A stretch of 64,000 bases of DNA from Neoechinorhynchus agilis (Eukaryota > Animalia > Acanthocephala). Of the stretch, positions 14,311 through 61,428 are shown one piece after another; the first letter of the stretch is position 1, and every line of letters starts with the position of its first letter. The stretch spans positions 5,827,489 to 5,891,488 of the forward strand of contig CM121342.1 in NCBI GenBank assembly GCA_051530055.1, written 5' to 3'. The translations under genes were made by a program, and so were the position numbers. The notes below the pieces were generated by a model, which was given only the letters and a program-made list of their open reading frames with translations, was not told where the DNA came from and did not search any database.

Positions 14311-15458
14311 CTAAAAAGTGCACTGTGCTAGAGGGAAACTGGCGGCTGTTGCCACACCGCACATATTGTTTCGATTTCGCGCCATTTTGATATATCCCTC
14401 ATCTCCCCAAGTAGGTCCCCAACTGTTCTTAACAAGCCAATAAGGTTCACTGACTTCAGTTCCATTAACGAATGTTTTTTCTACGCCTGCTCCTACAATG
14501 AGTACTCCATGATCCAATGCTTCCGGTGAGCATTCTTCGTCTCTGTAGACTCCCGACCGATAAAACATGAATTCCGGCGACGAAGCATCGATTCCAATAG
14601 CGATTGGACCGTGTTTCTTAAGTGCTTGTAAGAGAGCATCTTCATCGCCTTCCGGAAGGATATCGACGAAGCTCACACAATTCGCGGCAACATTGGTTCG
14701 ATTGAATCGACACAGATCTTCCATGGTTTCATAAGGATAACTCTGTTCAGAGTCTATTCCTCGATTGTCAATCACGTATTGGAAGCAAAAATCCATGAGA
14801 CCTCCGTTACATCCATTATTTCCCCATGCCGACGAACAATCGAGTATCTGTTGTTCGCTTAAAACGGGAAGGTTGTGCCCAGCCAGGGCGTAGGCCGCTT
14901 CCAAAGCACCGGTAGCCGCAAATGAGTAACATGAACCACAATGTCCTTGATCTTTGACGGCAGTCACCACTCCACGTTTCCTATAGTCTATATTGACAAC
15001 ACGATTGGTCTCGTTCTCTTTCACGAAGGCGTCTCGTCGGAACATTCGTCTTGATCGCGATCGTTGTTGATCGCTATATCGAAGACCATTTAGAGTCGAT
15101 TTTATCATACTCGGACTTAGGTCAGAATATGCATGCAGTCCGAGTCTATAAGTTGATCTGGGATTTGAGTTGTGTTTGGCGACTAAATGGACGTTTTCTA
15201 CGAAGTTTTGGAGGCTATCGTTTTCTTCGTGGACGTAAGTGTACATCACCGGTCATTTTTTTTGAGAAAGCAAAAAATGATCACTGATTATGCTTTTTTG
15301 AACGACGATTTCCAAAACTTCCAAAGAGACGAAATTGCATCGTTGAACGTCAAATCACTGGTAGCCAATCGTTCATCGAGCTCAAGTGCTGTCTTATAGT
15401 CACGACTGGAACAACAGGTAAGAAGACCAAGAATTAAAAGACTAAATCTCAATACCAT
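14311..15458 (-). CDS. CTSL: Cathepsin L-like papain-family cysteine protease (signal peptide, I29 propeptide, C1A domain)
   Basis: QGHCGSCYSF, CNGGLM, LDHGVL and YWLVKNSWG motifs; 367 codons after removing 47 nt TA-to-TA. Confidence 0.93.
15242..15290 (-). other. TA-flanked hairpin intervening sequence (47 nt removed)
   Basis: Sense strand: GCA-TA-ATCAGTGATCATTTTTT...AAAAAAAATGACCGGTGAT-G-TA-C. The join gives KKAYTYVHEE; I found no in-frame GT-AG option. Confidence 0.88.
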
Positions 15459-16253: not shown

Positions 16254-17126
16254 ATCGCTCCATTCTTCTTCTTTAAAAAAAGGAACTCATTAAGGGAAGC
16301 ACTATGAAAAACATAACTCACAGAAGCTATGAGTCTCTCTCCCCCGTGAACAAACAGAAAAATTGCATTCGGATGTGGTTAGATATTTTATTGTTTATGT
16401 CGCTTGCCGTAAAGACGAATCAAATTGCGATGTTTCATTCAAAAAAATAGATTTATCTTGAAAATTTTCGGCCTTTTCGTTGGCCTTTATCAGTCAATTG
16501 AAACTATAATAACTTCTTTACGGTAAAGACGAATGAGTAAATTTCGACCGATTGAACAAGACTAACGAAGTGAGATTTCTCCTTTCGAAATATTTCTTAA
16601 TTCAAACAAATACCTCTTAACGGGACTCAATTCTAACTTTATGATCCCGATGGATTTTATCCTTATTTTTATAACCTTTTTCTTTAATATGAGGATGCAT
16701 TCTCTTTCTGAATCACTGATTTTCTGATAAACCCATTGTATAATCTTAGTCAAAAAAAAATTCTGCTTGGTCCGACAGCATCAATTGTCTCAGTGGCGAG
16801 AAGTTGGAAAATGACGACATTTTAATTTTGGCCATTCCGTCTCTGGGAAAATATTGACAGTTAAGAGCAGTCGCTACAGTCGACTTTGGTCGCTTCTACC
16901 GATTGAATCCTAGTCATTTGATCGATTTAATATTCGATTTGCCAATGACTAGGATTCAACCGGTCGAAATATATTCGTCTTTAAAGCGATCTCCCTCGGG
17001 TGTCGCGACCTAAACAACCAAAAAAACACGTCACGTGTGGCTCGCTCGTGGATTCCAACACGAAAGAATCGTCTTTGTGCCAAATGGACACGTCCACTTT
17101 TCGGCAAAAACCGTTCTTGGAGATCT

Positions 17127-20100
17127 ATGAACACATTGAACCGTTTGCTCGACCAACTCAGTATATCTGAGAAAAGTTTGCCTGGACATGAAATTGGTTC
17201 GAATCATCGTAAAAAGCAGCTTCTCTCGTTCGCTCATTGCTTTGAACAACCTCAATTCGATTATTGGACACGGTCGAGTCAACGAGAGCAGCAGAGTGGT
17301 CGAGTGACTCAAAAGATCGGAAATAACTTGATAATCGATTACTGTTACATCGTCGATCTCCGGGACGTTCAATTCGAGACCAAAGAACACATTTCAATCG
17401 GAACTCATGTGCGATACTCACTAAAGAATGGTGGTCGTATTGTTCAAAATGTGACTAAAGTGACCAAAGACGCGAAGAATCGTATGGATGAAGATGGAGG
17501 TTGGTTGAGGCAACAAATGTCTCAACATGGTGGAGGCGGTTACGTAGGTTGTGTTAGTCGCTTTGACGGGTTTCAAGGCAAAATCGACGAAGCGATCAAC
17601 TTTGATCGATCGAATTTACTCGATTGGTGCTATGAGCCCTGTGTTCACGATTGGGTCACTTGTGTGCCTGAGAACGATGATGAACTAAAAAAAGAAGTGA
17701 AGTTTAAGGTGAAACCGAACCGAATTATCCAGATTAGTGGACCGTACCATAAACGAAGGACACGTTATGCATTCGTTGGCAACGTCGTCCACATCGACAC
17801 TGAACTCATCGATGTCAGTTTTATCAGAGAAGGTGATGTGCTTTTCGTAATCGGGGTCGAATCCAGCGTTTTTGAACAGGGATGGAGAGCTGTTGGATTG
17901 TGTAAAATTGTAACGGAAAATGTAGAAGAGAACGTAATTGGTCGTCTGGTTGTAAAAGGATGCGATGGTATCATCGAAACAAGAGGTTATCTCTACTGTA
18001 ACTTCGAACGAACTCAATGTTCAGTCAAAATGAACATCGTAACCGTGAGTGCGCCCAGTTGTCGATTTCTAACACCATGCACCAAATCACCATTTCTTTC
18101 TATCCAATTTTTTGTGGGCGTTTTACTACCGAGTAATCGATATTTTTCGAAATATCAGTCTGACAGGATTCACCAACGTACAATCAAATTCACCCCGAGG
18201 ATGTTGACTTTGAGCTTTCAATTCTTTTCAACTTTGTGGCACACTCACGAGAAGAAGGCAAAGGACACGTGAAGATAACAAAGATCAGTCTTTCTAATAG
18301 TTCAGGACCGTTCATCGTGCGTTCAGTGCTATTAAACAACAATCCGATCACTCAATACCCATTTACACTACGAGCAGCCGTCGACGAAGAGCTGAAGATT
18401 TTGGTTGATTCCAAAACCAAGTTTGATTTTAACATTTCTGAGCTTCAAATTCACCTGAAGACGAGCGAATCGACGTACGTTTGGAAGAAGATTTTAGTTT
18501 TTCAGAACGATTTTACAGCGAGTTCATTTGTGTTTCAGTCGTTTACATGTTATATTCGAGGCAAGGATGAATGGAGGCGGTACACTCAAAGTGGTCACCG
18601 AGCTCGATCACATCTCAGGTGTAGAATCAATAAGACGGACGTTGCTCACCGACAACTCCATTTTGAAGAATCTAATACTCACGAGAAACCCCCAAATGAC
18701 CTTAAAGATTTGATGATGAGCACGACTTTTAGTTCACGCGTCCTCGCCCAATTTTATCCTTATCTTCAACACAATCTAAACTGGATTCATTATGACCGAA
18801 CTTTGCATACTCTTTTACATCTTGAACAAATTACAGTTGAGATGCATGCATTTCAAAGTCCTAGTCATGGTGTAGTGTTCAAAGAAGAACGACAGCGACT
18901 TTTATCGTTCATATGGCCGTTTTCTGAAGATCAACTTGTTTCGGTTATGATTAACGACAAAATAGTGGCCGACGAAACCTTTGAAGGATTCATCCATAAA
19001 GTGGTTGATGACAAAGTTTTTGTCAAATTCGATGTTCAATTCTTCAATAGTGTTGTTGGACCGAGGACTAGTTCAATGGCAACAACAAAACGGTTCAAAA
19101 TAAGACACATTCCAGATACCAGCGTGTTTCGTAGGTGCCATCATGCCATATCGTACATCAAGAATGAACGGGAATTTGAACATATTCTGTTTCCTCGTTT
19201 AAGTCAATGTGTCCAATTGAACACGTCTCAGTGTAAACATAACGAGCCTATAAATGGACAGCTTAACGAAATGCAGAGGTTAGCGGTTGAAGGCATATTG
19301 CGATGGTCAAATGTTCATCCCGAACTTCCATCACCTCCTTTGTTACTTTTTGGTCCACCAGGAACGGGAAAAACGGTCACACTCGTTGAAGCTATAACTC
19401 AAGTCTATAAAATGTCAACACTAACGAAAATCCTTGCTTGTGCGCCATCGAACGCGGCATCCGACCTTATTTGCGAACGGATTCTGTCCACGACTCATAT
19501 ACCACAATCTCAAATTGCCAGAATTTACGCTCAATCTAGGAATGTGGACGATATTCCCTCGTCGTTATTACAAGTCAAAGTTCATCAACAAGACATTGAA
19601 CCTTTTTTGAGACGGCGAGTGATTGTAGTAACGTTCTCAACGGCGTCTCAACTTATTTATCAAAGCGGACGAATTCCCGACTTTACTCATTTGTTTCTGG
19701 ACGAATGTGCACAAGCGACTGAACCTGAAGCACTTATACCTCTTCGGGTAGCTGGTGGCAAGGGGCGTATTATTGTGCTGGCCGGAGATCCATGTCAACT
19801 TGGAAGTGTGATCAAATGTAAAGAAGCATCAGAGTTTGGATTAAACCGTTCTTTAATGCAACGTCTTATGGATCAGTGTCCGGACGTGTACTCGGACGAA
19901 CGGGGCTATTTCTTCACTCTGAACAATACATACCGATTTAGTTATCCATGTCTCATTCAAACGCCATCGAGGATGTTCTATAAAGACAGATTAGTGGCCG
20001 TGAGAAATAATTATGTTGATTCTCTTAACATCGACGATAATCGAGTAAAGAAAACATTTCCAAGAGGACTTGATTTCCCACTTATGTTTGTTCAAGTACC

Positions 20101-20584
20101 CTTTGGAAAATGTGAAAGATGCCCCGTTACAATGTCCTGCTTTAACATGGCGGAAGCCGGCGTCGCTTGCAAGTACGTTGCCATTATGTCCCAAATCGGA
20201 GTCCCCGTCAATGAAATCGGAATCATTACGCCCTATAGAAAACAAATAAAAGTGATCCGGAACCTTCTGGTTGAATTATTTGACCAGGAAACAGTTGAAA
20301 TGGTAAGAATTGGTACCGCTGAACAGTTTCAAGGCGATGAACGAACCGTCATCATTGTGAGCACTGTGAGGTCCTCGGGAACAAAAGAGAAAGATAATAT
20401 TGGATTCCTTCATTGCCCCAAAAGATTTAACGTGTCCATTACAAGAGCGAAATGCTTCATGATTTTAATTGGAAACGGAAAAACCATTTCGATGAGTCCA
20501 CATTGGAAAGCCATTATTGACTATTGTGATGCTAACCAGTCAATTGTGGGTGAGGGTACTATGAACAAAAAAAATACGATGTAA
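17127..20584 (+). CDS. MOV10L1: MOV10L1/Armitage-like SF1B RNA helicase
   Basis: N-terminal OB-like repeats (GKIDEAINF...EPCVHDWV), LHTLLHLEQ, FGPPGTGKTVT, CAPSNAASD, LDECAQ, LAGDPCQL, ITPYRKQ, QFQGDE, RFNVSITRAK. One GT-AG intron at 18045-18166; 1112 codons. MOV10L1 rather than MOV10 rests on the N-terminal extension. Confidence 0.8.
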
Positions 20585-22013: not shown

Positions 22014-22362
22014 TGAAACTTACAAAAAATGTCTTCAAATTAAAGGAGGAAACGAGGATTTTGCACTTTCAATCACAAATCCTCAGACATCATGAGAGTT
22101 TTGGACCAAAAATAACCAATCTCACATTGAACAAAAAATCAAAATTAGACGGATTCTTCGCACTTATCTCGAACCGATCACCTACGAATTTAGTATCGAT
22201 TTATGGGCTCAAATTGGTCGTTTGATCACTGTGTGTAGGGGATCGATAATTCTCACATTGATCGACGTTTTGAAGACGATCGATTTGAAAAAAGAACGAT
22301 CACGTTTTTGATCCGTTTGAAATTATAAAACATGCGGCATTGAACGATGAAACAAAATCACT

Positions 22363-23700
22363 GAGACGGATCGTTCGTGAGAGAGCGTGAAAACACAACT
22401 GGATTAATCCTCAATAGAGAAAATCCTTCGGGTTAATCAAAGTTTATAATTTTGGTGAAAATACTCCCCCGGTAATAACCTATTTGATTTATTGGAGAAG
22501 TTTCAACTGGAGACGGATCGTTCGTGAGAGAGCCTGAAAACACAACTGGATTAATCCTCAATAGAGAAAACCTTCGGGTTAATCAAAGTTTATAATTTTG
22601 GTGAAAATACTCCCCGGTAATAACCTATTTGATTTATTGGAGAAGTTTCAACTGGAGACGGATCGTTCGTGAGAGAGCCTGAAAACACAACTGGATTAAT
22701 CCTCAATAGAGAAAATCCTTCGGGTTAATCAAAGTTTATAATTTTGGTGAAAATACTCCCCCGGTAATAACCTATTTGATTTATTGGAGAAGTTTTCTCA
22801 ACTGGAGACGGATCGTTCGTGAGAGAGCCTGAAAACACAAATGGATTAATCCTCAATAGAGAAAATCCTTCGGGTTAATCAAAGTTTATAATTTTGGTGA
22901 AAATACTCCCCCGGTAATAACCTATTTGATTTATTGGAGAAGTTTCAACTGGAGACGGATCGTTCGTGAGAGAGCCTGAAAACACAAATGGATTAATCCT
23001 CAATAGAGAAAATCCTTCGGGTTAATCAAAGTTTATAATTTTGGTGAAAATACTCCCCCGGTAATAACCTATTTGATTTATTGGAGAAGTTTCAACTGGA
23101 GACGGATCGTTCGTGAGAGAGCCTGAAAACACAAATGGATTAATCCTCAATAGAGAAAATCCTTCGGGTTAATCAAAGTTTATAATTTTGGTGAAAATAC
23201 TCCCCCGGTAATAACCTATTTGATTTATTGGAGAAGTTTCAACTGAGACGGATCGTTCGTGAGAGAGCCTGAAAACACAAATGGATTAACCTCAAAGAGA
23301 AATCCTTCGGTTAATCGTTTATAATTTGTGAAAATTCGTAATAACCTATTTGATTTATTGGAGAAGTTTCAACTGGAGACGGATCGTTCGTGAGAGAGCC
23401 TGAAAACACAAATGGATTAATCCTCAATAGAGAAAATCCTTCGGGTTAATCAAAGTTTATAATTTTGGTGAAAATACTCCCCCGGTAATAACCTATTTGA
23501 TTTATTGGAGAAGTTTCTCTCAACTGGAGACGGATCGTTCGTGAAGCCTGAAAACACAACTGGATTAATCCTCAATAGAGAAAATCCTCCGGGTTAATCA
23601 AAGTTTATAATTTTGGTGAAAATACTCCCCCGGTAATAGCCTATTTGATTTATTGGAGAAGTTTCAAATGGAGACGGATCGTTCGTGAGAGAGAGCGTGA
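22363..23700. repeat. About 147-bp tandem array, about 9 copies
   Basis: GAGACGGATCGTTCGTGA starts at 22363, 22510, 22655, 22805, 22952, 23099, 23245, 23376, 23527 and 23671. Confidence 0.97.
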
Positions 23701-23773: not shown

Positions 23774-26700
23774 ATGGTTGAAGATCGTTCATTGTTGTTG
23801 AAGAATGTTCGTCGATGTTTGGCTAATGTTCTCTATCGAGTTAGTCGGAAAGTAGACAAACATCATCGTGTTTCGGTTGTCAATGACCCGGAGGAGGAAT
23901 CAGTGGCGATTAAACGGATTCGCCAAGATCCATATTATTATCTCGGTGATGGTCTTCGCCGCGTTCATCCTTATAAGTTCACATGGAAGACGTTTGCTAA
24001 AAGGAGATGGATCGGCCGGACGCTCATTGATGTTTATTCAAATGAGTTTGCTTATTTGGCAAGTGATGATACAAAAACTGAACAAGTCCGTGAAATGATT
24101 GAAACCGGAAAAATTCGAGTTAATGGACAGGTTAAAAGTTGTGAGTATGTTGTACACACGATCGAACCCATCGATTCCTATCGTGGACAAAAGAAAATGT
24201 GAATCGATGGGTTCTTAAGGGATAATGATCAGCTGACCAATGACGATCATAGGCATGAAAAACCCGTTCTGGACGCAGAAATCACAATTTGTAAAGAAAA
24301 TGATCAATATCTTGTTATTTGTAAACCAAGTTCAATACCAGTTCATCCTTGTGGAAATTATCGTTTCAATACGGTGACCAACATTCTTGAACATGAACAA
24401 GGACGAACTAACCTTAAACTGGTACATCGATTAGCTCAAAAGTGATCGGGTTTGAGGCTTTTCTCCAACGGTTACAAATGCCCATCCATCGGTGTCCTCT
24501 CCATGATCTCTAACGCATTGTTCTCCTTCTTAACTTTGCTTCAAAAAAAATGATTCACTCATCTAAATCGTTAATTTTTATCGTATTATTTTGAGAGCTT
24601 AAATTAAAGAAATGAAATTGGAATTAATTAAAGCAAATTTGATTAATGGGATATTAATCATTTCTCCAGAGAATCATACTCTCTTCTAGGCCGTAGATCC
24701 ATTTTCCGTCATTTCCTTTTGTTTTTAAATTCGGTTTTTTTTGAAGCCACATTCGGAAATGAATTATGCCTTCTCGATGATCTCTAACACATTGTTCTCC
24801 TTATCTTTGCTTCAAAAAAATGATTCACTCATCTAAATCGTTAATTTTTATCGTATTATTTTGAGAGCTTAAATTAAAGAAATGAAATTGGAATTAATTA
24901 AAGCAAATTTGATTAATGGGATATTAATCATTTCTCCTTTTAATCAATACTCTCTTCTAGGCTGTAGATCCATTTTCCGTCATTTCCTTTTGTTTTTAAA
25001 TTCGGTTTTTTTTGAAGCCACATTCGGAAATGAATTATGCCTTCTCGATGATCTCTAACACATTGTTCTCCTTATCTTTGCTTCAAAAAAATGATTCACT
25101 CATCTAAATCGTTAATTTTTATCGTATTATTTTGAGAGCTTAAATTAAAGAAATGAAATTGGAATTAATTAAAGCAAATTTGATTAATGGGATATTAATC
25201 ATTTCTCCATTTAATCAATACTCTCTTCTAGGCCGTAGATCCATTTTCCGTCATTTTCTTTTGTTTTTAAATTCGGTTTTTTTTGAAGCCACATTCGGAA
25301 ATGAATTATGCCTTCTCGATGATCTCTAACACATTGTTCTCCTTCTTATCTTTGCTTCAAAAAAATGATTCACTCATCTAAATCGTTAATTTTCATCGTA
25401 TTATTTTGAGAGCTAAATTAAAGAAATGAAATTGGAATTAATTAAAGCAAATTTGATTAATGGGATATTAATCATTTCTCCTTTTATTCAATACTCTCTT
25501 CTAGGCCGTAGATCCATTTTCCGTCATTTCCTTTTGTTTTTAAATTCGGTTTTTTTGAAGCCACATTCGGAAATGAATTATGCCTTCTCGATGATCTCTA
25601 ACACATTGTTCTCCTTATCTTTGCTTCAAAAAAAATGATTCACTCATCTAAATCGTTAATTTTTATCGTATTATTTTGAGAGCTTAAATTAAAGAAATGA
25701 AATTGGAATTAATTAAAGCAAATTTGATTAATGGGATATTAATCATTTCTCCTTTTAATCAATACTCTCTTCTAGGCCGTAGATCCATTTTCCGTCATTT
25801 TCTTTTGTTTTTAAATTCGGTTTTTTTGAAGCCACATTCGGAAATGAATTATGCCTTCTCCATGATCTCTAACGATTGTTCTCCTTATCTTTGCTTCAAA
25901 AAAATGATTCACTCATCTAAATCGTTAATTTTTATCGTATTATTTTGAGAGCTTAAATTAAAGAAATGAAATTGGAATTAATTAAAGCAAATTTGATTAA
26001 TGGGATATTAATCATTTCTCCTTTTATTCAATACTCTCTTCTAGGCCGTAGATCCATTTTCCGTCATTTCCTTTTGTTTTTAAATTCGGTTTTTTTGAAG
26101 CCACATTCGGAAATGAATTATGCCTTCTCCATGATCTCTAACACATTGTTCTCCTTATCTTTGCTTCAAAAAAATGATTCACTCATCTAAATCGTTAATT
26201 TTTATCGTATTATTTTGAGAGCTTAAATTAAAGAAATGAAATTGGAATTAATTTAGCAAATTTGATTAATGGGATATTAATCATTTCTCCTTTTATTCAA
26301 TACTCTCTTCTAGGCGCTAGATCCATTTTCCGTCATTTCCTTTTGTTTTTAAATTCGGTTTTTTTGAAGCCACATTCGGAAATGAATTATGCCTTCTCCA
26401 TGATCTCTAACACAGCTCCTCCTTATTCTAGTTTTCCAAAAAAATGATTCGGCCTCATCGGAATCGTTAATTTTTATCGTATTATTTTGAGAGCTTAAAT
26501 TAAAGAAATGAAATTGGAATTAATTAAAGCAAATTTGATTAATGGGATATTAATCATTTCTCCTTTTAATCAATACTCTCTTCTAGGCCGTAGATCCATT
26601 TTCCGTCATTTCCTTTTGTTTTTAAATTCGGTTTTTTTGAAGCCACATTCGGAAATGAATTATGCCTTCTCATGATCTCTAACACATTGTTCTCCTTATC

Positions 26701-28287
26701 TTTGCTTCAAAAAAATGATTCACTCATCTAAATCGTTAATTTTTATCGTATTATTTTGAGAGCTTAAATTAAAGAAATGAAATTGGAATTAATTAAAGCA
26801 AATTTGATTAATGGGATATTAATCATTTCTCCTTTTATTCAATACTCTCTTCTAGGCCGTAGATCCATTTTCCGTCATTTCCTTTTGTTTTTAAATTCGG
26901 TTTTTTTTAAGCCACATTCGGAAATGAATTATGCCTTCTCCATGATCTCTAACACATTGTTCTCCTTCTTAACTTTGTTATATTATTAATCCTTTTCATT
27001 TTTTTTAAACAATAAAAGATTTATTTTAAAATGATTAAATCGTCCCCCGGACGCTGACCGCATTTCCTCGTTGGATTGCGAGGCTTATTCTTTGTATCAG
27101 GAAAATCCTCTCGCGTCGCTCCCCTGTTAATCTTTCTCCTATGGATTCACTGCTTTCAAAAACCCAATGATTCACCCATCTAAATCGTTAATTTTAATCA
27201 TTTTGGAATTACTGTTTAAAGTCTTACTAAAAAATGATGATGAACCGCCGGTGAAGTTCGACGAACGTCTTTTTAATCGAAGACTTCTAACCAATAATTT
27301 CTTTGCACATTCCCCAATTTTTAAATCCTATTTTTTTGAATGTATTTTGAGAGCTTAAATTAAAGAAGAAGGGAAATAAAAGAGAAAAAAGTCGGATATC
27401 TTCACGAATTAATGCTATTTTCGACTCATTTTTCTAATATGTTGTCGAAAAAATTAATATTTATTGAACTCATGAAAGACGACATTTAAGATACTTATAA
27501 AGTCGGATACTCGTGATGGATTTCTGAGCTTATCTTCTTTTTTTGGTGTCGAATAAGACAAAATTAGTTCGGAAATATGGCCACCTTCGAAGGGATCACT
27601 TTTAGTTTAGACAGATGCACCAGTGGACTAATGATACTTGCCAAATCATCGAATGCGGCTACTTTGATTCAGAAACTATTTAACGATGGGAAAATCCGGA
27701 AAACTTATTTGGCAAAAGTGACTCATATTCCGATTCAATTCGATAGCGAACAAATCGTTAGTGTGGACAAGCGAGTTGCCGTAATCTCCTATAAACACGC
27801 TCTATGTCGAATAATAAACGAAGATTTAAGTGAGCGAGGAAAATCAGCTGTAACCTTATTTGAGGTCTTTGATCGCGAGAAAAGAATACTCAGTTGTAAG
27901 CCTATCAGCGGTCGAATGCATCAGATCAGACTTCATCTTCAATACCTCGGATGTCCAATAGTTGACGACAATGTGTACAACAATGTTCGAATATGGAAAT
28001 CCGATTTTTCGCAGAAAGACGAGGAAGTTATTGCCAATTTAGTGGAAGAACGAAAAAGATTGATTTTGGAAGCCACCTTATTAAATCAGGAGGGCAAAAC
28101 GGAATTAGCCGTGGATGCAGCTCATTTCGACGAAACGTGTAAAGAATGCAAATATCCATCGGCGGATCCTCGTCGGTCTCAAATGTCCATTTGTCTTCAT
28201 TCATATGAATTAGAAGTGGACGGTGAAAAGTACGTCTCGGATCTTCCACAATGGGCTCTGAGGTTTTGTTCTTATACACAAGATTAA
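23774..28287 (+). CDS. RPUSD2: RluA-family pseudouridine synthase
   Basis: GLRRVHPY.F...AKRRW.GR, HRHEKPV, KPSSIPVHPCG, HRLDRCTSG and GRMHQIRLHLQYLG motifs. 425 codons after removing two TA-to-TA segments (63 and 3176 nt). Confidence 0.9.
24153..24217 (+). other. TA-flanked hairpin intervening sequence (63 nt removed)
   Basis: Perfect 14-bp inverted repeat GAACCCATCGATTC (24164-77) / GAATCGATGGGTTC (24201-14); contains an in-frame TGA; the join gives CEYVVRDND. Confidence 0.72.
24432..27609 (+). other. Large TA-flanked intervening sequence with terminal stem (3176 nt removed)
   Basis: CAT CGA TTA G|...|AC AGA restores HRLDR; terminal arms AAAAGTGATC (24438-47) / GATCACTTTT (27594-603). Confidence 0.85.
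24499..26970. repeat. About 270-bp tandem array, about 9 copies, inside the RPUSD2 intervening sequence
   Basis: ATGAAATTGGAATTAATT recurs at about 270-bp spacing (e.g. 25426, 25697, 25966). Confidence 0.97.
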
Positions 28288-28417: not shown

Positions 28418-28757
28418 TAGAAGTCTACAAGCGCGATGATTTCTTTTCGATTAAAAAGACGTTCTGTGAACCTCGTAAAGGGTTCTCAGTTTGTTAGTCG
28501 GAAGGTTTGTGCAAAACCATGTAAAAGATTATGAACAACCGAAAAGGAAAACTCGCAAGTAATAGAATTGATTCATCTTTAACGTGATCCCTCTCCTTCT
28601 TTAACCAAAATGAATCGATAATCTATTTATCTTATGTTTCACACATTCCTCGATAGGAAACCCCGTGAGGTTCAGTTTTAGAACTGAACCACCGGTGAGG
28701 TTCGACGAACGTCTTTTTAATCGAAAAAAAATCATTTACCGCGTTTGTAGACTTGTA
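28418..28757. mobile_element. Foldback MITE, family AAGTCT (longer member)
   Basis: TAGAAGTCTACAAGCGCG...TTTTCGATTAAAAAGACGTTC / GAACGTCTTTTTAATCGAAAA...CGCGTTTGTAGACTTGTA; a partial copy lies at about 27240-27295. Confidence 0.8.
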
Positions 28758-28857: not shown

Positions 28858-30353
28858 ATGTCAACTCCAAGGCGAAAGGTCCTCTTTTTTTAGTGCTTTT
28901 TTCCTTTGACTTGTACGTTCAGGTACTGCTGATGGGAAAAAGTGGAAGTGGAAAGACTAGCATGAGATCCATAATATTCGCAAATGGAATGGCTCGAGAT
29001 ACCAGACGACTTGGTCCAACCAGTTTAGTTCTGCTGAATTCGAAAAACGAGCAATATTTGTTAATTTTAGTCGATGTCGAACAAACCTATGTCCGATTCT
29101 TGAATTGTATCGTAAATCTCTGGGATTGTGGCGGGTAATACGTCTCTAAAAATTAAACTTTTATTACCTAAAAACAATTAAAGTCAGGAAGCATTCATTA
29201 AGGAGTATTTCACTTCACAGAAAAGTGTTGTTTTCAAGGAAGCAGAAGTGTTGATCTATGTGTTCGATATTGAAAGCAAGGAACATGAAGACGACATTAA
29301 TTGTTTCAGAATGTGCCTCGATAGGATTAGAGAGGTTATCTTCTTCTTTATAGAGCTTCAATATTTCTAAAATTGATGAAAAATGAAATTGATAAAAATT
29401 ATGTAAATTTATTGAATCGATATTTCGGCTCAATCAAAAGCCTTTATCAAAACAACCTTGATAAAGATCATGGAAATCGAGTGAAGTATTAAAAAAAGAA
29501 ATATCTTTTTATAATCTTTTTATTTTCTCGACTCTCTCGTTCAAAAAAAGTCCGTTTAGAATTCACCAAACGCCAAGATATTCTGCCTTGTACACAAAAT
29601 GGATTTAGTTCCAGCAGTAGATAAGGAAACGGTATTTTGATCAATTCTTAATCAATATTCTTATAAGTTGTATTATTTCAAGGTTTTTCAATCGATGGAA
29701 ACTGAATTGAAGGGTTTAACCGCGGTGGATCAGGGAAGAGCTGAGCCTTGTAAATGCTTTCCAACGTCTATTTGGGATGAGACATTGTACAAGGTCACTT
29801 TAATCGTTTTGAAAAAACGCCTTCAAATCTTCACAGGCATGGTCACAAATAGTTTACATGTTAATTCCAAACATGGCATTGTTGGAACGAAAACTGCAGA
29901 ATTTCGCTGATCTTCTCGACGCAGATGAAGTTTTGCTGTTCGAAAGAGCAACTTTCTTAGTGAGTGATCGCTAAAATTGTGTTAATCTTTCGTTTTTTAG
30001 GTGATTTCTCAGTGTACTAGGACAATGCATAGAGATATCAATCGATTTGAAAAGATTAGCAGTATCATTAAACAGTTCAAACAGAGCTGTACAAAACTGG
30101 CCACTTCGTTTCAATGCATGGAAGTTCGGAATTCGATGTTCTGTGCTTTTATTGAGAGCTTTACGCAAAATACTTATGTTATGGTCATCACGTCCAGTCC
30201 TTCATCAGGTTTGTTAAAAGCCACCTAAATATCGAGTTTATAAAAGTGGTTTTAAAAGTACATTCTGTATAAATTGGAATAAAAAAACAACGTTTAGCCC
30301 AAATTATGACAATGATTAGAAAGCGAACTGTCTTGAAACAATCGACTAATTGA
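28858..30353 (+). CDS. RRAGA: Rag GTPase A/B
   Basis: [48 protein letters not shown] and [12 protein letters not shown] motifs. All introns are GT-AG; the last exon is uncertain. Confidence 0.93.
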
Positions 30354-30536
30354 CCGTAATTCGATCATGGAGATGTAGTGATCTTGCTTCTCCTGTGAAC
30401 GAGCTCATTAGCCAAAATATTATAAAGAAATAACGGTTATTTGGATCTTTAGAGATCTCAAAAAACATCAAAATATTGAGATATTTCGAAACTTCTCGCT
30501 TAGTCAACGAACTATTTTTTGAAGGATTTTGATCGA

Positions 30537-31545
30537 GATTCTTAAATGAATTTCCATTGAGTTTGGTGTACGGTCATTGGAAAAAAAGCCATGAGTTTTT
30601 CGTTCTTTGCCATAGTTCGGATTCGGCGTTTACAAGTCTTAATTTTTCGAGACCTGAACAATCAAACGTTCTAAACATTTAGAAAATGTGGTGATCACAT
30701 TTTGTGGGCCGATACAAAAGATTGAGGTTTTCTCTAGATTCTTAAATGAATTTCCATTGAGTTTGGCGTACGGTCATTGGAAAAAAAGCCATGAGTTTTT
30801 CGTTCTTTGCCATAGTTCGGATTCGGCGTTTACAAGTCTTAATTTTTAGAGACCTGAACAATCAAACGTTCTAAACATTTAGAAAATGTGGTGGTCACAT
30901 TTTGTGGGCCGATACAGTACGGTCATTGGAAAAAAAACCATGAGTTTTCGTTCTTTGCCATAGTTCGGATTCGGCGTTTACAATGCTTAATTTTTCGAGA
31001 CCTGAACAATCAAACGTTCTAAACATTTAGAAAATGTAGTGATCGCATTTTTTGGGCCGATACAAAAGATTGAGGTTTTCTCTAGATTCTTAAATGAATT
31101 TCTATTGAGTTTGGCGTACGGTCATTGGAAAAAAACCATGAGTTTTTCGTTCTTTGCCATAGTCCGGATTCGGCGTTTACAAGTCTTAATTTTTCGAGAC
31201 CTGAACAATCAAACGTTCTAAACATTTAGAAAATGTCGTGATCGCATTTTTTTGGCCGATACAAAAGATTGAGGTTTTCTCTAGATTCTTAAATGAATTT
31301 CCATTGAGTTTGGCGTACGGCCGTTGGAAAAAAAGCCATGAGTTTTTCGTTCTTTGCCATAGTCCGGATTCGGCGTTTACAAGTCTTAATTTTTCGAGAC
31401 CGAACAATCAAATGTTTGAACATTTAGAAAAATGTGGTAGTCACATTTTTGGCCGATACAAAAGATTGAGGTTTTCTCTAGATTCTTAAATGAATTTCTA
31501 TTGAGTTTGGCGTACGGTCAATGGAAAAAAACCACGAGTTTTCGC
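30537..31545. repeat. 200-bp tandem array, about 5 copies
   Basis: GATTCTTAAATGAATTTC at 30537, 30737 and so on; one copy has an internal deletion. Confidence 0.95.
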
Positions 31546-31808
31546 CACAGTTCGTATTTGAGCTCTATCCAAAGAGATTTTCTTTTGATAAGTGTAGGAC
31601 GAGAAAACTTATTGAATTGGTATGATTTTAGGTGGAATGACGGTAGTGAACATTCGGAATGCAAGGAAATACTTTGGAAAGATTGAACGATAGCTCTTCA
31701 TTTGTTCACATAAAAGAGTGTTTTTTTTTCTTCTAATTATGGTGAAGACTCACTGAGGCGCACTGTCATAATATGTTGGATCCATTTTCCCGAATTTCCT
31801 AAACCGCC

Positions 31809-32177: not shown

Positions 32178-33127
32178 ATCTAAAATTTATTATACCAGTT
32201 TTTTTTTCTTCTAAAACTGTGCTATAAATATCGTTTCATTATTTAGTTTGGCGTTGTCGAGACTGAGGATCCGAGATCAAGAGCGCTGACGACGGCACCT
32301 TGGGACATCCAGAGATGTTTTATAGCGAATTAACGAATAATTGATTTATTTGAAATTATATTTAGAAAAAAAAGGTAATAAAAGGCGATTTTGGTTTGGG
32401 AAAAAAATTATTAATAAAAGAATAAAAACAAAATCGATCTCGTAATTTAAGAGAAATACTTCTTTTGTGGGGTATCGACCCGTCGGATCTATTGGTTCTT
32501 TTATGTAGTGCAAAGAAATTTCTCTAATGATTTTAAACTGCCGATTGTTTTCGAAGAGGCACATAATCTTGTAGGTCTTTTAAAATCATTAGAAATTTCT
32601 TCGCATCACAAAAAACAACCCAATGTTCAAACTCCTCTTGGATTTAATCTGCCTGGGTAAATGAGACATTTTCCCTTTCGTCCGAGGTTTCTCAATTGAT
32701 TCCAATGATCGAATCAAAGTTTCTGATAGTCAAATTTGAATTTACAATTTTTCTAGCTTTTTTCGCTCAGAGTGATCCGTATATTTAAACAAAATCACTA
32801 AGATTCGTGAAATGGACAACTTAAAATAGTCTTTGGACGATAATCCAAGGAATCGGAGGCGTTTAAAAAGACGGAGTTTATCTTAATGCAACGAAATTGA
32901 AAGATGTGCGAAAAAACGAGTCTCTATTTTTATATCTTCTTTTAATTCCCCCAATAAAGTGCTCCCCTCGTGGCACTGTACTAAATCATTCGATTTTCTT
33001 GCCAGTTCAAAACGAATATCCAAATTTGCTAACAATAAAGATCCAAAATAACAAAATCCTTTTAAATTCAACCAAAAAAGGTGCTTATAAATACACAATT
33101 TTTATTTTTAGTTAAAAATATAATGAG

Positions 33128-33314
33128 TATGTGGCGGTTGGGGAAAAATTATATATCAAAGACTTTAATTAAAATATTTCGTCCAATCAAACAGAACTCG
33201 ATCACTATGAATTATTGTTTGTAAGTGTTTTTCAACTGTGAAAAATCCATTGCGATTGGTCGAAATATTTTAATTAAAGTCTTTGATATAAATTTTTTTC
33301 CCAACCGCCATATA
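33128..33314. mobile_element. TA-bounded foldback MITE, with a truncated tandem copy at 33343-33493
   Basis: TATGTGGCGGTTGGGGAAAAATT...AATATTTCG / CGAAATATT...TTTTTCCCAACCGCCATATA; arms of about 60 bp. Confidence 0.82.
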
Positions 33315-33594
33315 CACAATTTTTAGTTAAAAATATAATGAGTATGTGGCGGTTGGGGAAAAAATTATATATCAAAGACTTTAATTAAAATATTTCGACC
33401 AATCAAACAAAACTCATCACTATGAATTATTGTTTGTAAGTGTTTTTCAACTGTGAAAAATCCATTGCGATTGGTCGAAATATTTTAATTAAAGTGATCA
33501 CAATTTTTACCGTGAAAGAAATCGACAAAATTCTTTGTTATCTAGAGAGAAAAAAAGTGTCAATCATTTTCTATTGGCTTTAACACTTCTACTA

Positions 33595-38900: not shown

Positions 38901-40775
38901 TCGGACGCCAGTGATTGCGAAGAGAATGAAGGCACGGATGAGGACTTTGAAGACGGCGATATGGTCGAGATAGTGAAGGGTAAGGATTATGATGGCGAAC
39001 TTCCATTCAGTGAAAGTGACGACGACGACGATTGCAGTGTTCAATTCAGGGGTAATTTATTCACTCAAAAACAACATCATACCGATTGGAAGTCGATTGT
39101 TTATAAAGAAACGGCATTTTCGAATGATACGTCCGATGAGTTGGCCGGACTTTTTCGTTTAAAACAAAAATCAAACATTGATATGGACGATTATCATCAC
39201 CGAACAATCGAATCATCAGGCGCTCAAAATATTCAAGAACTGACCAATCTGATTAAAAATTGTTTCGTAACTGGTCAATGGGATGAAAATACCGACGCAG
39301 AAGCTCTTCTAGATGCTCACGATAATGAGGAGGATACTCATCACCCGGCTGAAGCATTACGATCACATGGCCCTGATTTTGAGGGGGAGGAGGAAAGTTC
39401 ATTTTTAAAAGAATTGAATGATCAGGCGGCTAAACAGGAGAAGTTGAACAAAACAATTTTGGGCTCTATGAGTGAAAAAGAGCGACTAAACATTGAAGGA
39501 TATAGGCAGGGGATGTATTTAAGACTGGAAATCGACAAAGTGCCAATTGAGTTTATTAATAATTTCGTTCCATCTGTTCCTATTCTCATTGGTGGACTAA
39601 ATTCTTTAAATCATGGATCATCGAGTGATCCTTTTTGTTGAAGATGTTTTATTAGAAACAAAAGGAGTCGCTTAATGATCCATGTCATAGAAAGTGGATT
39701 TGGCATCGTTCATGTTCGTCTACGAAAACATCGTTGGCATAAAAAGATTTTAAAGTGTCGTGATCCAGTGATAATATCAATGGGATGGCGGAAATTCCAA
39801 GTAACGCCAGTTCTGTTCGGTCAGGACCATAATATGAGAAATCGATTTCTTAAATATACACCGGAGCATTCTTATTGCCATGCAGCGTTCTATGGACCAA
39901 CTTATCCGAGAAATACCGGATGCCTTTTCATGGTAGATACATCGCCTACTTCTCAGAACTTTCGAATAGCCGGACTCGGAGTAACACTCGAATCGAACAA
40001 ATCATTAAAGATTGTAAAAAAGTTGAAGCTTACCGGCGAACCGTACCAAGTGTTCCGGAAAACATGTTTTGTTAAAGGAATGTTCCACAGTGCACTCGAG
40101 GTTGCAAAATTCGAAGGAGCTGCCATTAAGACGGTAAGTGGGATTCGTGGACAGCTAAAAAAAGCTTTAAATACTCCCAATGGCGCATTCAGAGCTACAT
40201 TCGAAGATAAATTGAAACTCAGTGATATTGTTTTTCTGAGAGCTTGGGTACCTGTTCAGATACCTAAATTCTATAAAGTAGTAAATAATCTGTTGCTACC
40301 TATCAATGAGAAACATCTATGGACAATGATGCGGACGGTCGGACAAATCAAACGAGATTTGGGAATAAAGTTTGAGCCTAAGGTAGATAGCCTATACAGA
40401 GAAATAAACGAGAGACCCCAAGTACGGTTCTTCGCTCCTTTGCATATCCCTGCTGAACTTCAGAAGGAACTTCCTTTTAAAATTAAACAACGTGTTGTTC
40501 CTAAGATCGAAAATCCTATTGAGAATTTGAGACCACCTATAGTAAAGGATCTAAAAGAAAAGGAAATATCCGAATATGTTAAAAAACTAAAAATCCTTTA
40601 TAAAAAAAGGTGTATATATCGAGAGCAAAAGAAGAAGGCTCATAATAGACAAAGGAATGCTGAAAAGAAAAAGATGGAGGAAAAAGCCATTAGAAATAAA
40701 CCGAAGAAATGGTACAGTAACGAACCAAACAGAAAAACTAAAGCTATGAAACGTACTAATAAAAGAAAGACTTGA
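35952..40775 (+). CDS. BMS1: Ribosome biogenesis GTPase BMS1
   Basis: [66 protein letters not shown] and [10 protein letters not shown] motifs. The only interruptions are two TA-bounded segments; 974 codons with junctions 36982-38802 and 39609-39689. Confidence 0.95.
37005..37875. repeat. About 143-bp tandem array, about 6 copies, inside BMS1 intervening sequence 1
   Basis: CCGAGCTACC at 37064, 37206, 37350, 37492, 37636 and 37777. Confidence 0.95.
38022..38213. mobile_element. Foldback MITE nested in BMS1 intervening sequence 1
   Basis: TGTTGCTGAGGGGATTCCTACTCTCCGGACAATAAAGATATTGATTTATT / AATAAATCAATATCTTTATTGTCCGGAGAGTAGGAATCACCTCAGCAACA; TA at 38019-20 and 38214-15. Confidence 0.85.
39607..39689 (+). 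other. TA-flanked hairpin intervening sequence (81 nt removed)
   Basis: Perfect arms CATGGATCAT (39612-21) / ATGATCCATG (39675-84) plus inner stems; contains an in-frame TGA; the join gives GGLNSLESGFGIV. Confidence 0.82.
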
Positions 40776-49948: not shown

Positions 49949-50106
49949 ATAATAAACAGGCATGACATTATTGATTTATTTGAAATATTTCAAACGAGGT
50001 ATGCTCGCATCTTCAGTCGTTTTGTTTGTAAGTTTTTTAACTATTTAAGCTAATAGAATTCGCGAAATATTTCAAATAAATCAATAATGTCATGCCTGTT
50101 TATTAT
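49949..50106. mobile_element. Foldback MITE
   Basis: 43-bp inverted repeat ATAATAAACAGGCATGACATTATTGATTTATTTGAAATATTTC and its reverse complement. Confidence 0.85.
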
Positions 50107-52773: not shown

Positions 52774-52874
52774 ATCATTTTATTATTCGCGAAATATTTC
52801 GAGAGAGAGGAAACCTCGCCTTGGAGAAAACTGCGAAGTTTCCTTTCGAAATATTTCGCGAATAATAAAATGAT
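52774..52874. repeat. Hairpin with perfect 29-bp arms
   Basis: ATCATTTTATTATTCGCGAAATATTTCGA / TCGAAATATTTCGCGAATAATAAAATGAT. Confidence 0.9.
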
Positions 52875-53067: not shown

Positions 53068-53295
53068 GGGCGCAACTTTACTCTTAACCTCCCGCGATAT
53101 TGATTTATTATTAAATTTTCCGACCGCATGTGATCCTCTTCAGATATCTATAAAAAATTCATTTTTAGATTGATTGGTAAGCTCGAAAGTGATCTCACAG
53201 TTGGTAAACTTGATGTTATCGCTTGGAATCGCATGCAGTCGAGAAAATTTACAATAAATCAATATCGCGGGGAGGTTAAGAGTAAAGTTGCGCCC
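53068..53295. mobile_element. Foldback MITE
   Basis: GGGCGCAACTTTACTCTTAACCTCCC-GCGATATTGATTTATT / AATAAATCAATATCGCGGGGAGGTTAAGAGTAAAGTTGCGCCC. Confidence 0.85.
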
Positions 53296-55200: not shown

Positions 55201-56558
55201 ATGACTGCTGGGATTTTGTGGATTTTATTATTGTCCGGGTAAGCTCAAAAATATACGTCTATTTCTAACAGCCATAAAACTATTAGTATCAAACATGTTC
55301 GATCCAAAGCATTGTTGAAGCCGTCAGATTACAATGATGATTACGAATGGGAAAAATCTGATGAAATTGATCCGCTGGTTCGTTACATTACCCATACGGA
55401 AATGATTAATATGTTCCGTGCACTTGAAGAGCACTTTCCTCGTGTTTGCCACGTCTATGAAATCGGAAAAAGTGTAGAAGGGCGCTCGCTTTTAGCCATA
55501 CAACTGACTGATTTTGAAGATGAGGACGATGGCTTAAAACCAATGGTTAAATATATTGGAAATATGCATGGGGATGAGGCTGTATCCAGGCAAATGATGA
55601 TTCAACTCGCAATTCATTTACACATTGATTATGCTTCTGGGCTGCTAGGGTACATAATCATTGGTTAGCAAGCAGTTTTTACTCAAATGATCGTGATATT
55701 TGCCATCTCTTAAAGAAAACAGAAATTCACATTTTACCAACGATGAACCCGGACGGATTCAGTCGGTCTATAGAGGGTAAATGTGACACAATTCAAGTGA
55801 AAGGCTACTATACGCGAGCAAACGCAAACGGCATTGATTTAAATCGCGATTTTCCTCTAGAAGCAAAAATTGGGAATCATCAACCGGAAACACTGGCAGT
55901 TATGAATTGGACTCTTAGTAATCCATTCGTCCTTTCTGCTAACTTTCACGGTGGAGCCCTTCTTGTGTCCTATCTTTATGACCATTCTAAATCGAACAAA
56001 AAAGAGTACAGCAAATCTCCAGACGATGAACTCTCACAATTTTTAGCAAATATATACGCAACCAATCATAAAACGATTTCCCGAGGTGATCAATGCAGTC
56101 CATCAGATCCTCAGTACATCACAAATGGAGCCGAATGGTACCCGTTCAATGGATCTCTTCAAGATTTTACTTATATGTACAGTAATTGCATTGATATTAC
56201 TGTTGAAATTTCCTGTTGCAAACATCCGAAAAGCTCAGAATTGAGGACTTTTTGGGCGGATAATAAAGATGCTCTAATTGAACTCATAAAAGCCGTTCAT
56301 ATGGGCGTCAAGGGATTTGTCACAGATGGAGATACCGGAGAACCTCTACGAGATGTTCATATTCGGGTTCAAGGTAATGGAAAAATTACAAAGACGGATT
56401 CTAATGGACGTTTTTGGCGCTTACTCGTACCTGGACACACTTACACCCTCTCCTTTAAAGCTCAAGGATATCAACGAGAGGTAATAAAGGATCTGTATGT
56501 TCCATACGACAAAATGTGGAGAATGGATGTTGAACTTTTCAAGGCGAACACTCGCTAG
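55201..56558 (+). CDS. M14B metallocarboxypeptidase (single-domain CPD/CPM/CPE type, with transthyretin-like C-terminal domain)
   Basis: Signal peptide; IGKSVEGR, GNMHGDE, MNPDG, RANANGIDLNRDF, ANFHGG, ITVEISCCKHP and GVKGFV motifs. One GT-AG intron (55239-55271) plus a 47-nt TA segment; 426 codons. Confidence 0.92.
55619..55667 (+). other. TA-flanked hairpin intervening sequence (47 nt removed)
   Basis: TA-CA-CATTGATTATG...CATAATCATTG-GT-TA; the join gives LAIHL-ASSFYSND and fixes the frameshift. Confidence 0.83.
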
Positions 56559-60799: not shown

Positions 60800-61428
60800 T
60801 TACGACAAACTGAATGAGACTATGATATCGTCTATGTGTTCAACCTTTGTTTTTGCTACTGCAGAAGATATTGTTTTTGCCAAGTTTCGTGTTTGTTCAT
60901 AGAGTTCTTTTGGAGGCAATGGTTGCTCAAAAAGTTCATTGACATTAGTTGTCCAATCTGAATGAATGATCACTTTCGGGTTAAGAAATACAGGAGTTTC
61001 AAGAATGCCTAGTTGATGTTCGTATAAGGCTAAAAGTATCTTTAGAATTCATCCCAATGATACTTTTCCTTCCCATAAAACCAAGCTCGGTCGGATAAAG
61101 CGCCCTTGTCGTCATCCACAAGACCAACATCAAGAATAGCGTCCGTTGTAGATGCCATGATTTCAATGACAGGATCTTCGTAGGAAGCTGCTGCAGCTTC
61201 TGTGAGAGGACGACGACTTCCACCGCCTCCACCACCAGTTCCGAAAATGCCACCTCCTCCAGTTTCATTAATGATATTACCAACTGAATCCACAGTTGAA
61301 CCATGGAAAAGGGATGACCGTGAAGTTACTGTATTTTGATTACCGCTGATAAGTCGTGTCCTTTCGTTCGGTTCATCGATGTCTCGAGAACAACAGCAGC
61401 AAAATGCACGCCTCAGGCCGCCTAACAT
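60800..61428 (-). CDS. LAMTOR1: Ragulator subunit LAMTOR1 (p18)
   Basis: N-terminal Cys cluster, ERTRLI, I-x-x-S-T-x-x-A-I-L-D-V, DRAWFY, and C-terminal KVEHIDDIIVSF; 192 codons after removing 53 nt TA-to-TA. Confidence 0.82.
61023..61077 (-). other. TA-flanked hairpin intervening sequence (53 nt removed)
   Basis: Sense strand: TA-TGGG-AAGG-AAAAGTATC...GATACTTTT-AG-CCTT-A-TA. The join gives DRAWFYEHQLGIL; the internal GT..AG pair is out of frame. Confidence 0.87.

Follow-up and report, generated by a model that had tools for sequence, protein, structure and literature searches.

We analyzed a window of 64,000 nucleotides from the acanthocephalan Neoechinorhynchus agilis (assembly GCA_051530055.1, contig CM121342.1, positions 5,827,489 to 5,891,488 of the forward strand; coordinates below count from the first letter of the window). 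In this window, the gene of an RPUSD2-type pseudouridine synthase, encoded on the + strand, is interrupted within its catalytic motif by a 3.2-kb element bounded by TA dinucleotides. Five further interruptions of the type TA...TA occur in conserved coding sequence of the same 64 kb, resulting in at least six elements in five genes, with lengths ranging from 47 to 3176 nt, the 3.2-kb one being the largest. The inserts contain stop codons or break the reading frame, and in six cases out of six the removal of the insert with a single TA left behind restores a protein consistent with its homologues. From their sequence features, the elements can be identified as TA-duplicating, non-autonomous insertions resembling the miniature inverted-repeat transposons (MITEs) of the Tc1/mariner type. 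They are probably removed in some way before translation.

The interrupted RPUSD2 gene

The RPUSD2 gene is divided into three coding segments on the + strand, and is open for 424 codons apart from the inserts. The first segment (23774..24154), delimited by translation, an alignment of 11 homologues and the annotated start at 23774, extends from the ATG to ...SCEYVV and ends with the left TA (24153-24154) of a 63-nt element. The second (24218..24433, RDND...LVHRL) ends with the left TA (24432-24433) of the 3.2-kb element, and the third (27610..28287) extends from DRCTSG to ...YTQD and the stop codon. Between HRL (CAT CGA TTA, ending at 24433) and DRCTSG (GAC AGA TGC ACC AGT GGA, starting at 27610) there are 3176 nt, whereas the motif HR-[LI]-DRxTSG is unbroken in all 11 aligned homologues, with H, R, D, R, T, S, and G invariant. 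The left TA is within the TTA Leu codon of HRL and the right one is at 27608-27609. The repeat common to both edges is actually TTAG, and the termini compatible with an exact join are TA..TT, AG..TT, or GC..TA. The predicted exact join reads CATCGATTA/GACAGATGC (here and below, the slash marks a junction).

The intervening segment itself (24434..27609, + strand) comprises the element and one copy of the TA, and has no match in Pfam or Rfam. Its ends carry a perfect 10-bp inverted repeat, with a left arm AAAAGTGATC (24438..24447) and a right arm GATCACTTTT (27594..27603), each placed 4 nt inside its own TA. The outermost 4 nt of the two ends are unmatched. When 20,000 pairs of 25-nt ends anchored at a TA were drawn at random from the window, perfect inverted repeats of at least 10 bp had a frequency of 0.0008. 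The left arm includes a cryptic 5' splice site (AAAA/GTGATC), and the right arm is followed by AG (a cryptic 3' splice site), TT, and the right TA. Tandem Repeats Finder identified a satellite in the interior (24498..26967), made of 9.1 copies of a 269-bp unit with 96% matches. These copies are around 4% diverged, and the first and the last have in common the edge variant cttcttaactttg. The unique right part of the element (26968..27593) holds fragments of the same unit, and such degenerate pieces are found in the right ~640 nt. The open reading frames (ORFs) of the element match no Pfam family. It encodes no transposase, and its interior is satellite. The ORF of the satellite, like that of LAMTOR1 (see below), has no record as a called gene.

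The original prediction, made from the letters of the window, had described a TA-bounded segment splitting HRL from DRCTSG, a 10-bp terminal stem, and some nine copies of a repeat of about 270 bp, all of which we recovered at the coordinates above. It had also placed a MITE fragment inside the segment, which could not be verified as such: the right end holds the degenerate pieces of the 269-bp unit and 41 bp (27241-27281) that are 95% identical to 28685-28725, in the intergenic spacer between RPUSD2 and RagA. Aside from this 41-bp piece, there is no further copy of the element or of its satellite in the 64-kb window.

The second element of RPUSD2 (24155..24217, + strand) has a length of 63 nt, which is in frame, yet it contains an in-frame TGA. 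It harbors a 14-bp perfect stem, GAACCCATCGATTC (z = -3.7). Removal from TA to TA, with a predicted join GTTGTA/AGGGAT, gives EYVV/RDND and places 19 residues between VNG and HRHE, the same number as in all homologues. Only the TA-to-TA join does so.

TA-bounded elements in four other genes

The 47-nt element of the cathepsin L propeptide is on the - strand (15242..15288; left TA, in gene orientation, at 15289-15290; z = -3.0). Its join reads FKKAYTYVHEEN and is predicted at AAAGCATA/CACTTAC. Once joined, the I29 domain becomes full-length and covers positions 1-56 of the 59 in the profile with 40.1 bits, compared with positions 16-56 and 27 bits when unjoined. In BMS1, an element of 81 nt (39609..39689, + strand; TAs at 39607-39608 and 39688-39689) folds entirely into a hairpin (z = -6.1) whose 10-bp arms are 3 nt inside the TAs. 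The predicted join, TTCTTTA/GAAAGTGG, gives GGLNSLESGFG. From the GG(L) motif to an invariant Glu, this leaves exactly three residues, a spacing shared by 11 homologues and by PDB chains from human, yeast, and Chaetomium. We also tried to delimit this element by CATG (69 nt) or by TTAA (66 nt), but both were ruled out, because only the TA-bounded 81 nt give the three-residue spacing.

The carboxypeptidase D gene is interrupted by 50 nt (55632..55681, + strand; TAs at 55630-55631 and 55680-55681). The predicted join, ATTGATTA/CTCAAATG, restores HL-HID-YSNDRD, with the three residues found in the PDB entries 1h8l (duck) and 3mn8 (Drosophila). This element has no significant stem (z = +0.26). The element of LAMTOR1 has 53 nt and is on the - strand (61023..61075; left TA, in gene orientation, at 61076-61077). 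It has a stem formed by AAAAGTATC and GATACTTTT (z = -3.6), and its predicted join, GGTTTTA/CGAACATC, gives DRAWFY/EHQLGIL, which aligns without gaps to human LAMTOR1 chains at weak E-values (0.02-0.06).

Overall, four of the five short elements fold into hairpins, with z between -3 and -6, and five of the six elements have a perfect inverted repeat of at least 9 bp, for which random TA-anchored ends give a frequency of 0.0028. Screens for inverted repeats helped to find the elements of cathepsin L and LAMTOR1, so that the stems of these two are partly ascertained, while the second RPUSD2 element and those of BMS1 and carboxypeptidase D were found from breaks of the reading frame alone. The stem of LAMTOR1 resembles that of the 3.2-kb element, with AAAAGT(G)ATC in common, and the six elements are otherwise unrelated in sequence. 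Hence, they are not the product of one recent burst. The 7-mer AGTGATC occurs 22 times in the window, for 7.4 expected, and none of 100 shuffles reached 22. Three elements (3.2-kb, cathepsin L, and BMS1) contain it in their stem or 5' part, and several of its occurrences are in plain coding sequence. A search for CTAAAAGTRATC as a shared end motif was uninformative.

A seventh, large candidate in BMS1 (36982-38802, in frame, with a TTAC repeat) was left uncounted: its inverted repeat has 6 bp and the annotation uses there a GT-AG intron (36984-38858). This 1.9-kb intron contains a tandem repeat of ~120 bp and a nested, TA-flanked hairpin of 192 bp (38022-38213). Its annotated 3' site (cgacgatcgag/) lacks a pyrimidine tract.

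Origin of the elements

An insertion by a TA-duplicating transposon is the simplest origin for these elements, and one that the original prediction did not name. The hallmarks of Tc1/mariner MITEs are present: a TA duplication in six elements out of six, terminal inverted repeats in most of them, and, in the 3.2-kb element, the lack of a transposase. Stowaway-like MITEs of the Tc1/mariner type duplicate TA, have inverted repeats, form short hairpins, and insert in exons, as do the elements of N. agilis. In another acanthocephalan, Pomphorhynchus laevis, RPUSD2 is a single uninterrupted exon. Hence, the two elements in the RPUSD2 gene of N. agilis are insertions. When a TA-duplicating element inserts in a TTA codon, the join from TA to TA automatically restores the motif.

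The window also has hairpin elements in its non-coding DNA, and their flanks are mixed: the foldback at 33118-33324 is flanked by a hAT-like target duplication of 8 bp, AGTTAAAA, and the hairpin nested in the BMS1 intron is flanked by TA. The presence of a hAT-like duplication beside the TA elements indicates that more than one superfamily of DNA transposons has been active. Further non-coding foldbacks were found at 49949-50106, 52774-52874, 53091-53271, and 57344-57466.

Integrity of the interrupted genes

We searched for intact copies of the two genes that the public annotation has split, RPUSD2 and BMS1. A word-indexed search of 5.8 billion clusters returned none, but it was not exhaustive, since it missed the annotated 216-residue fragment of RPUSD2. 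HMMER, run exhaustively over 1.84 billion representatives, retrieved only the 3' RPUSD2 model of the window itself (P0001), followed by the protein of P. laevis (36% identity), and no second RPUSD2. The best outside homologues are from P. laevis for RPUSD2 and from a bdelloid rotifer for BMS1. An intact RPUSD2 paralog elsewhere had been named in the original prediction as the observation that would speak against it, and none was found in any of the collections searched. Across the ~2,000 aligned codons of the five interrupted genes, there is no other stop codon or frameshift.

These results bear on the hypothesis that the genes are simply broken. Disruptive transposons might have inserted in the genome of a parasite that is shedding genes, or the assembler might have picked a null allele, in which case nothing would be removed. 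Around 45% of the metazoan BUSCO genes are missing in N. agilis, the alternate haplotype is outside the assembly, and the pieces of the genes are annotated as separate genes. Furthermore, the TA-to-TA restoration is expected for any such insertion. Yet this hypothesis has to account for six insertions that hit five conserved genes in a stretch of 64 kb. One of these genes is BMS1, of which no second copy was found and which other eukaryotes require for ribosome biogenesis. It also has to account for the otherwise intact frames, for elements that are unrelated in sequence, with a satellite already ~4% diverged, and for DNA pooled from ~50 worms, which implies that the insertions are at high allele frequency. 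Ordinary MITE insertions are not known to be tolerated at such density in essential exons. All in all, broken genes seem an improbable explanation. The RPUSD2 segment, for which the original prediction had suggested an intron-like excision, is very probably an intervening sequence that needs exact removal and not the mark of a dead gene, given the 424 open codons, the single copy, and the five sister elements.

Errors of assembly or sequencing, such as a foldback or a chimeric insertion from long reads, might be suspected in a hybrid assembly of Oxford Nanopore Technologies (ONT), HiFi, and Illumina data. However, artefacts do not make target-site duplications, and here the elements are at different sites, each with an exact 2-bp duplication and an inverted repeat of its own. 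The 3.2-kb element contains an ordered satellite with edge variants, and the reported k-mer completeness of the assembly is 96% (PMC12690905). We regard this explanation as extremely improbable. The case for removal before translation builds on the density of the elements (six, in five conserved genes, over 64 kb), on BMS1, for which no second copy was found, the intact frames, the diversity of the elements, and the assembly from pooled worms.

Splice signals and cryptic GT-AG sites

The genes of the window use the standard code, belong to an animal gene set, and have ordinary GT-AG introns of 45-250 nt, which rules out a ciliate origin. Such introns, with T-rich 3' ends, are found in RagA (at least 7), TTL, and TRAP-beta. 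Hence, splicing is normal in this organism, and the TA elements are a separate class. The latter lack a pyrimidine-rich 3' tract: they end in ...GGTGATGTA, ...GGGTTCTTA, and ...CATGTCATA, and the 3.2-kb element has CACTTTTAG at its cryptic site only. In the 3.2-kb element, the removal that gives the conserved protein does not have U2-type GT-AG termini, which would leave 12 additional nt. As for U12-type AT-AC introns, all six elements lack both the 5' consensus /ATATCC and the branch site TCCTTAAC. The covariance models of Rfam gave no family at the gathering score in the whole window, and there is no tRNA. Group I and group II introns, and other known RNA families, were hence ruled out. Programmed translational bypassing, as in gene 60 of T4 or the 'byps' of yeast mitochondria, was rejected as well, since the codons for take-off and landing are different and a hop over 3.2 kb is not feasible.

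A cryptic GT-AG removal of the 3.2-kb element by the spliceosome deserves more attention. The sole in-frame option, CAAAA/GTGATC ... CACTTTTAG/T, has its sites within both arms of the stem and would produce the junction CTCAAAA/TTTAGAC. The 12 nt that remain would be translated as HRL-AQNL-DRCTSG, a product that might be tolerated or partly active. The original prediction had noted this insertion as LAQN, which is the same one in another register. The protein with AQNL still scores 93.2 bits against PseudoU_synth_2 of Pfam, and in-frame options also exist at the 63-nt element (24145-24219) and at that of BMS1 (39625-39691). However, the exact TA-to-TA join scores 104.5 bits, i.e., 11 bits more, and the four additional residues would stand right before the catalytic Asp of an invariant motif. 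The alternatives at the two other elements would remove the conserved YVVR of RPUSD2 or swap out the invariant Glu of BMS1. In LAMTOR1 there is no in-frame GT-AG option, as use of the internal GT..AG would retain 19 nt and cause a frameshift. The cathepsin L element has no AG inside, and the sole GT-AG alternative in carboxypeptidase D is 26 nt long. Hence, these sites are unusable in three elements and no single GT-AG mechanism can serve the whole class. There is a known case of Tc1 being spliced from mutant pre-mRNAs of C. elegans, but this uses cryptic sites and is imprecise, unlike the exact join proposed here. Cryptic GT-AG splicing of the 3.2-kb element is therefore quite unlikely.

Possible removal from the RNA or from the DNA

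If the elements are removed, this may occur in the RNA or in the DNA. We favor, tentatively, the removal from the RNA as non-canonical introns, aided by the pairing of the ends, because of the precedent of the larvacean Fritillaria borealis, of the coexistence of non-canonical and GT-AG introns in euglenids, and of the frequency of hairpins among the elements of the window. This choice of a route is a weaker one than the conclusion that the elements are removed. A non-autonomous TA-duplicating transposon landed in the TTA codon of the HRL/D catalytic motif of a single RPUSD2 gene, and its 269-bp internal unit was amplified later to ~9 copies. In the scenario that we favor, the two TA junctions would be drawn close to each other in the pre-mRNA by the terminal inverted repeat, as has been proposed for the introns of F. 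borealis and of euglenids, and a precise cut would leave one TA. The TA-bounded class would thereby coexist with ordinary GT-AG introns.

Several observations weigh against this scenario. The restoration of the proteins by a TA-to-TA join proves the history of the insertions and not their present-day excision, since it is expected for any insertion that duplicates TA. The carboxypeptidase D element is stemless, and the distance from stem to TA varies between 0 and 9 nt among the elements. We looked for an excess of G.U over A.C among the mismatches of the stems, as a sign of selection at the RNA level, and found none. Besides TA, no end sequence is common to the six elements, and they have no polypyrimidine tract and no branch-like motif. 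In-frame GT-AG alternatives exist at three of them (see above). The BRAKER annotation, which included hints from RNA-seq, left the fragments unjoined, although this is weak evidence because such pipelines discard non-canonical junctions. Finally, a TA as the sole invariant is the hallmark of sequences that Paramecium removes from its DNA, the internal eliminated sequences (IESs). End pairing, on which excision depends according to the original prediction, is common in the class but not universal, and given the stemless element, the variable distances, and the lack of a G.U excess, such a dependence is unproven. The stem that the original prediction saw as kept despite the expansion of the satellite may just be a terminal inverted repeat that is still young. 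In turn, its suggestion that excision tolerates large sizes is plausible in a class that spans 47 to 3176 nt, and an intron-like excision is supported indirectly.

The alternative is a programmed excision from the DNA akin to that of ciliates, where IES-type elements would be kept in the germline and precisely cut from the somatic DNA, or possibly from that of transcribing germ cells, so that transcription would start from genes already mended. IESs of Paramecium are TA-bounded, intra-exonic, and have a Tc1/mariner-like origin. The elements of N. agilis have the same signature: TA is their only invariant (six out of six), they are 47 nt to 3.2 kb long, they are placed within coding exons, and their origin is Tc1/mariner-like. 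They also lack a splice-like consensus or polypyrimidine tract, and one of them, in carboxypeptidase D, lacks a stem. All six exon elements are flanked by TA, whereas the non-coding hairpins have mixed flanks. This hints at a removal agent specific for TA, albeit with small numbers, and would fit a TA-specific excision that filters which insertions are tolerated in exons. On the other hand, precise intragenic excision is known in no animal, and our search of the literature found no programmed DNA elimination in Acanthocephala. All six elements are present in an assembly that was largely made from whole-worm DNA, and their inverted repeats differ from one element to the other, which is ill-suited to a sequence-specific excisase. 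We thus see DNA excision as possible but rather doubtful, and it is unlikely that N. agilis precisely removes TA-bounded IESs from the DNA of the cells expressing these genes.

The detailed comparison with Paramecium shows both likenesses and differences. In both cases TA is invariant at the two ends and one copy is left (in N. agilis, by prediction), the elements are dense in coding exons, their origin is of the Tc1/mariner type, their lengths range from tens of nt to kb, and there is little further consensus. In contrast, IESs are removed from the DNA by a domesticated piggyBac transposase during the formation of the ciliate macronucleus, and they usually have no long stems. Their weak end consensus, TAYAGYNR, is not followed by the ends of the six elements (TAGCTCAA, TAAACTAA, TACACACG, TAAGAACC, TAATCAGT, TACATCAC, TAAATCAT, TATGACAT, TATGCTTC, TAAAAACT, TATGGGAA, and TATAAGGC).

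Comparison with transposon-derived introns

Among animals, the closest case is that of F. borealis, which has non-canonical introns derived from MITEs (Henriet et al. 2019; PMC13326754; reviewed in PMC11282704). As in N. agilis, one copy of the duplication closes the upstream exon and the other makes up the last bases of the intervening sequence, there are terminal inverted repeats, each species has its own positions, and GT-AG termini are absent. However, around 95% of the introns of F. borealis are non-canonical, of the form exon-YAY/AG...YAY/ (AG/AC, AG/AT), and its U2AF is duplicated, whereas N. agilis has common GT-AG introns and the duplication in its elements is just TA, with neither an AG start nor YAY. 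The exons of N. agilis end in ATA, GTA, TTA, TTA, TTA, and TTA, and an AG start can be read in the 3.2-kb element only. The removal at the RNA level has been demonstrated in F. borealis, while in N. agilis we infer it from the sequence.

The nonconventional introns of euglenids (PMC11282704; PMC12501133) also coexist with GT-AG introns. They have non-canonical borders, short direct repeats that make the junction ambiguous, no polypyrimidine tract, inverted repeats that join the ends, and lengths from tens to thousands of nt, and a MITE origin has been suspected for them. The differences are that in euglenids a CAG at +4..+6 usually pairs with a CTG at -8..-6 and the borders are pyrimidine/purine, while in N. 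agilis the stems vary and the border is always TA. We found no such CAG/CTG pairing in N. agilis: five of the six elements have stems, which are of other sequences and at distances of 0-9 nt. Euglenids are a protist lineage in which the excision of these introns as full-length circular RNA, following conventional splicing, is known, whereas the elements described here are known from sequence alone.

Introners of Micromonas, Aureococcus, and dinoflagellates are non-autonomous, have target duplications and inverted repeats, and form introns (Huff et al. 2016 and Gozashti et al. 2022, as far as they are presented in PMC11282704). They supply or co-opt GT/GC-AG sites and have many near-identical copies. 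In contrast, the junctions in N. agilis are not GT-AG and its elements are unrelated, bar the AAAAGT(G)ATC of two of them. In the literature on animals, acanthocephalans, and rotifers, we found no description of such TA-bounded elements. If transcripts were to join TA to TA, N. agilis would be the second animal lineage, after Fritillaria, with miniature transposons turned into introns, and the first where such elements stand beside a normal GT-AG set and are defined by TA and usually a hairpin only. It would then provide a clean system to study how introns are recognized without a splice consensus and how transposons are converted into introns. A removal at the DNA level would mean that ciliate-style genome editing exists in animals, and no earlier case of a programmed DNA excision that is both precise and intragenic is known from a metazoan.

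Public annotation of the interrupted genes

The assembly of N. agilis has 46.2 Mb, with Hi-C scaffolding and an N50 of 16.4 Mb, and its DNA came from ~50 pooled worms and from single females (PMC12690905). In the public annotation, RPUSD2 and BMS1 are each cut into two models at the TA elements (23774-24445 and 27577-28287; 35952-39641 and 39675-40775). The first model of BMS1 has 604 residues and ends at a TGA within the 81-nt element, and the second has 366 residues and starts at an ATG in the same element (ACOME3_006023 is a N. agilis hypothetical protein of the same contig). The 5' model of RPUSD2 has 216 residues and ends in ...LVHRLAQK*. Its length implies an 'intron' of 21 nt, GT..AG, at 24199-24219 (GTGAATCGATGGGTTCTTAAG), which skips the TGA of the 63-nt element and looks like an artefact of the prediction. 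The 3' model, P0001, has 236 residues and starts from an ATG at 27577, within the 3.2-kb element.

The public annotation is hence blind to this class of elements, which is a variant of the transposon-derived non-canonical intervening sequences. As genes are split at TA elements in the annotation, the gene counts of acanthocephalans, their BUSCO scores, and the 'gene losses' deduced from them may be distorted. The BUSCO completeness is higher in the transcriptome of N. agilis than in its genome, with 54.9% vs 47.1% for the metazoa dataset and 71.0% vs 58.4% for eukaryota (PMC12690905). This gap would fit interruptions that are absent from the mRNA and that halt gene finders in the genome. Public data for the species include RNA-seq of 74 worms (PRJNA1223661), a transcriptome (Zenodo 10.5281/zenodo.17199078), and genomic reads (JBMGUZ). 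The word 'intron' does not occur in the paper on the N. agilis genome (PMC12690905), and the papers on P. laevis and on syndermatans are likewise silent on introns.

Other features of the window

Several other tandem arrays were identified, at 12878-14155, 22300-23691, 61900-63900, and 3890-4600, with periods of ~378, 148, 220, and 47 bp. Satellite expansion is frequent in this small genome outside of coding sequence. A patch richer in G and C (50% GC) has a 772-residue ORF with an RVT_1 domain (5891-8209), and corresponds to a retroelement.

The annotated MOV10-like helicase (1111 residues) is encoded by two ORFs (17037-18272 and 18236-20584) that overlap by 37 nt in different frames. Within 18161-18272, neither a plausible GT-AG intron nor a TA-to-TA element accounts for this shift of frame. 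Two tandem paralogous ORFs of unknown function (41183-42463 and 44080-45358) are 99.7% identical, and the second has a deletion of 2 nt (CT) at 44819. The annotation bridges this deletion, which is a true frameshift or else an error of the assembly, with an intron of 49 nt. Finally, the genes of RagA (28858-31700) and LAMTOR1 (60500-61428), which are partners in the Rag-Ragulator system, are ~30 kb apart, which is probably a coincidence.

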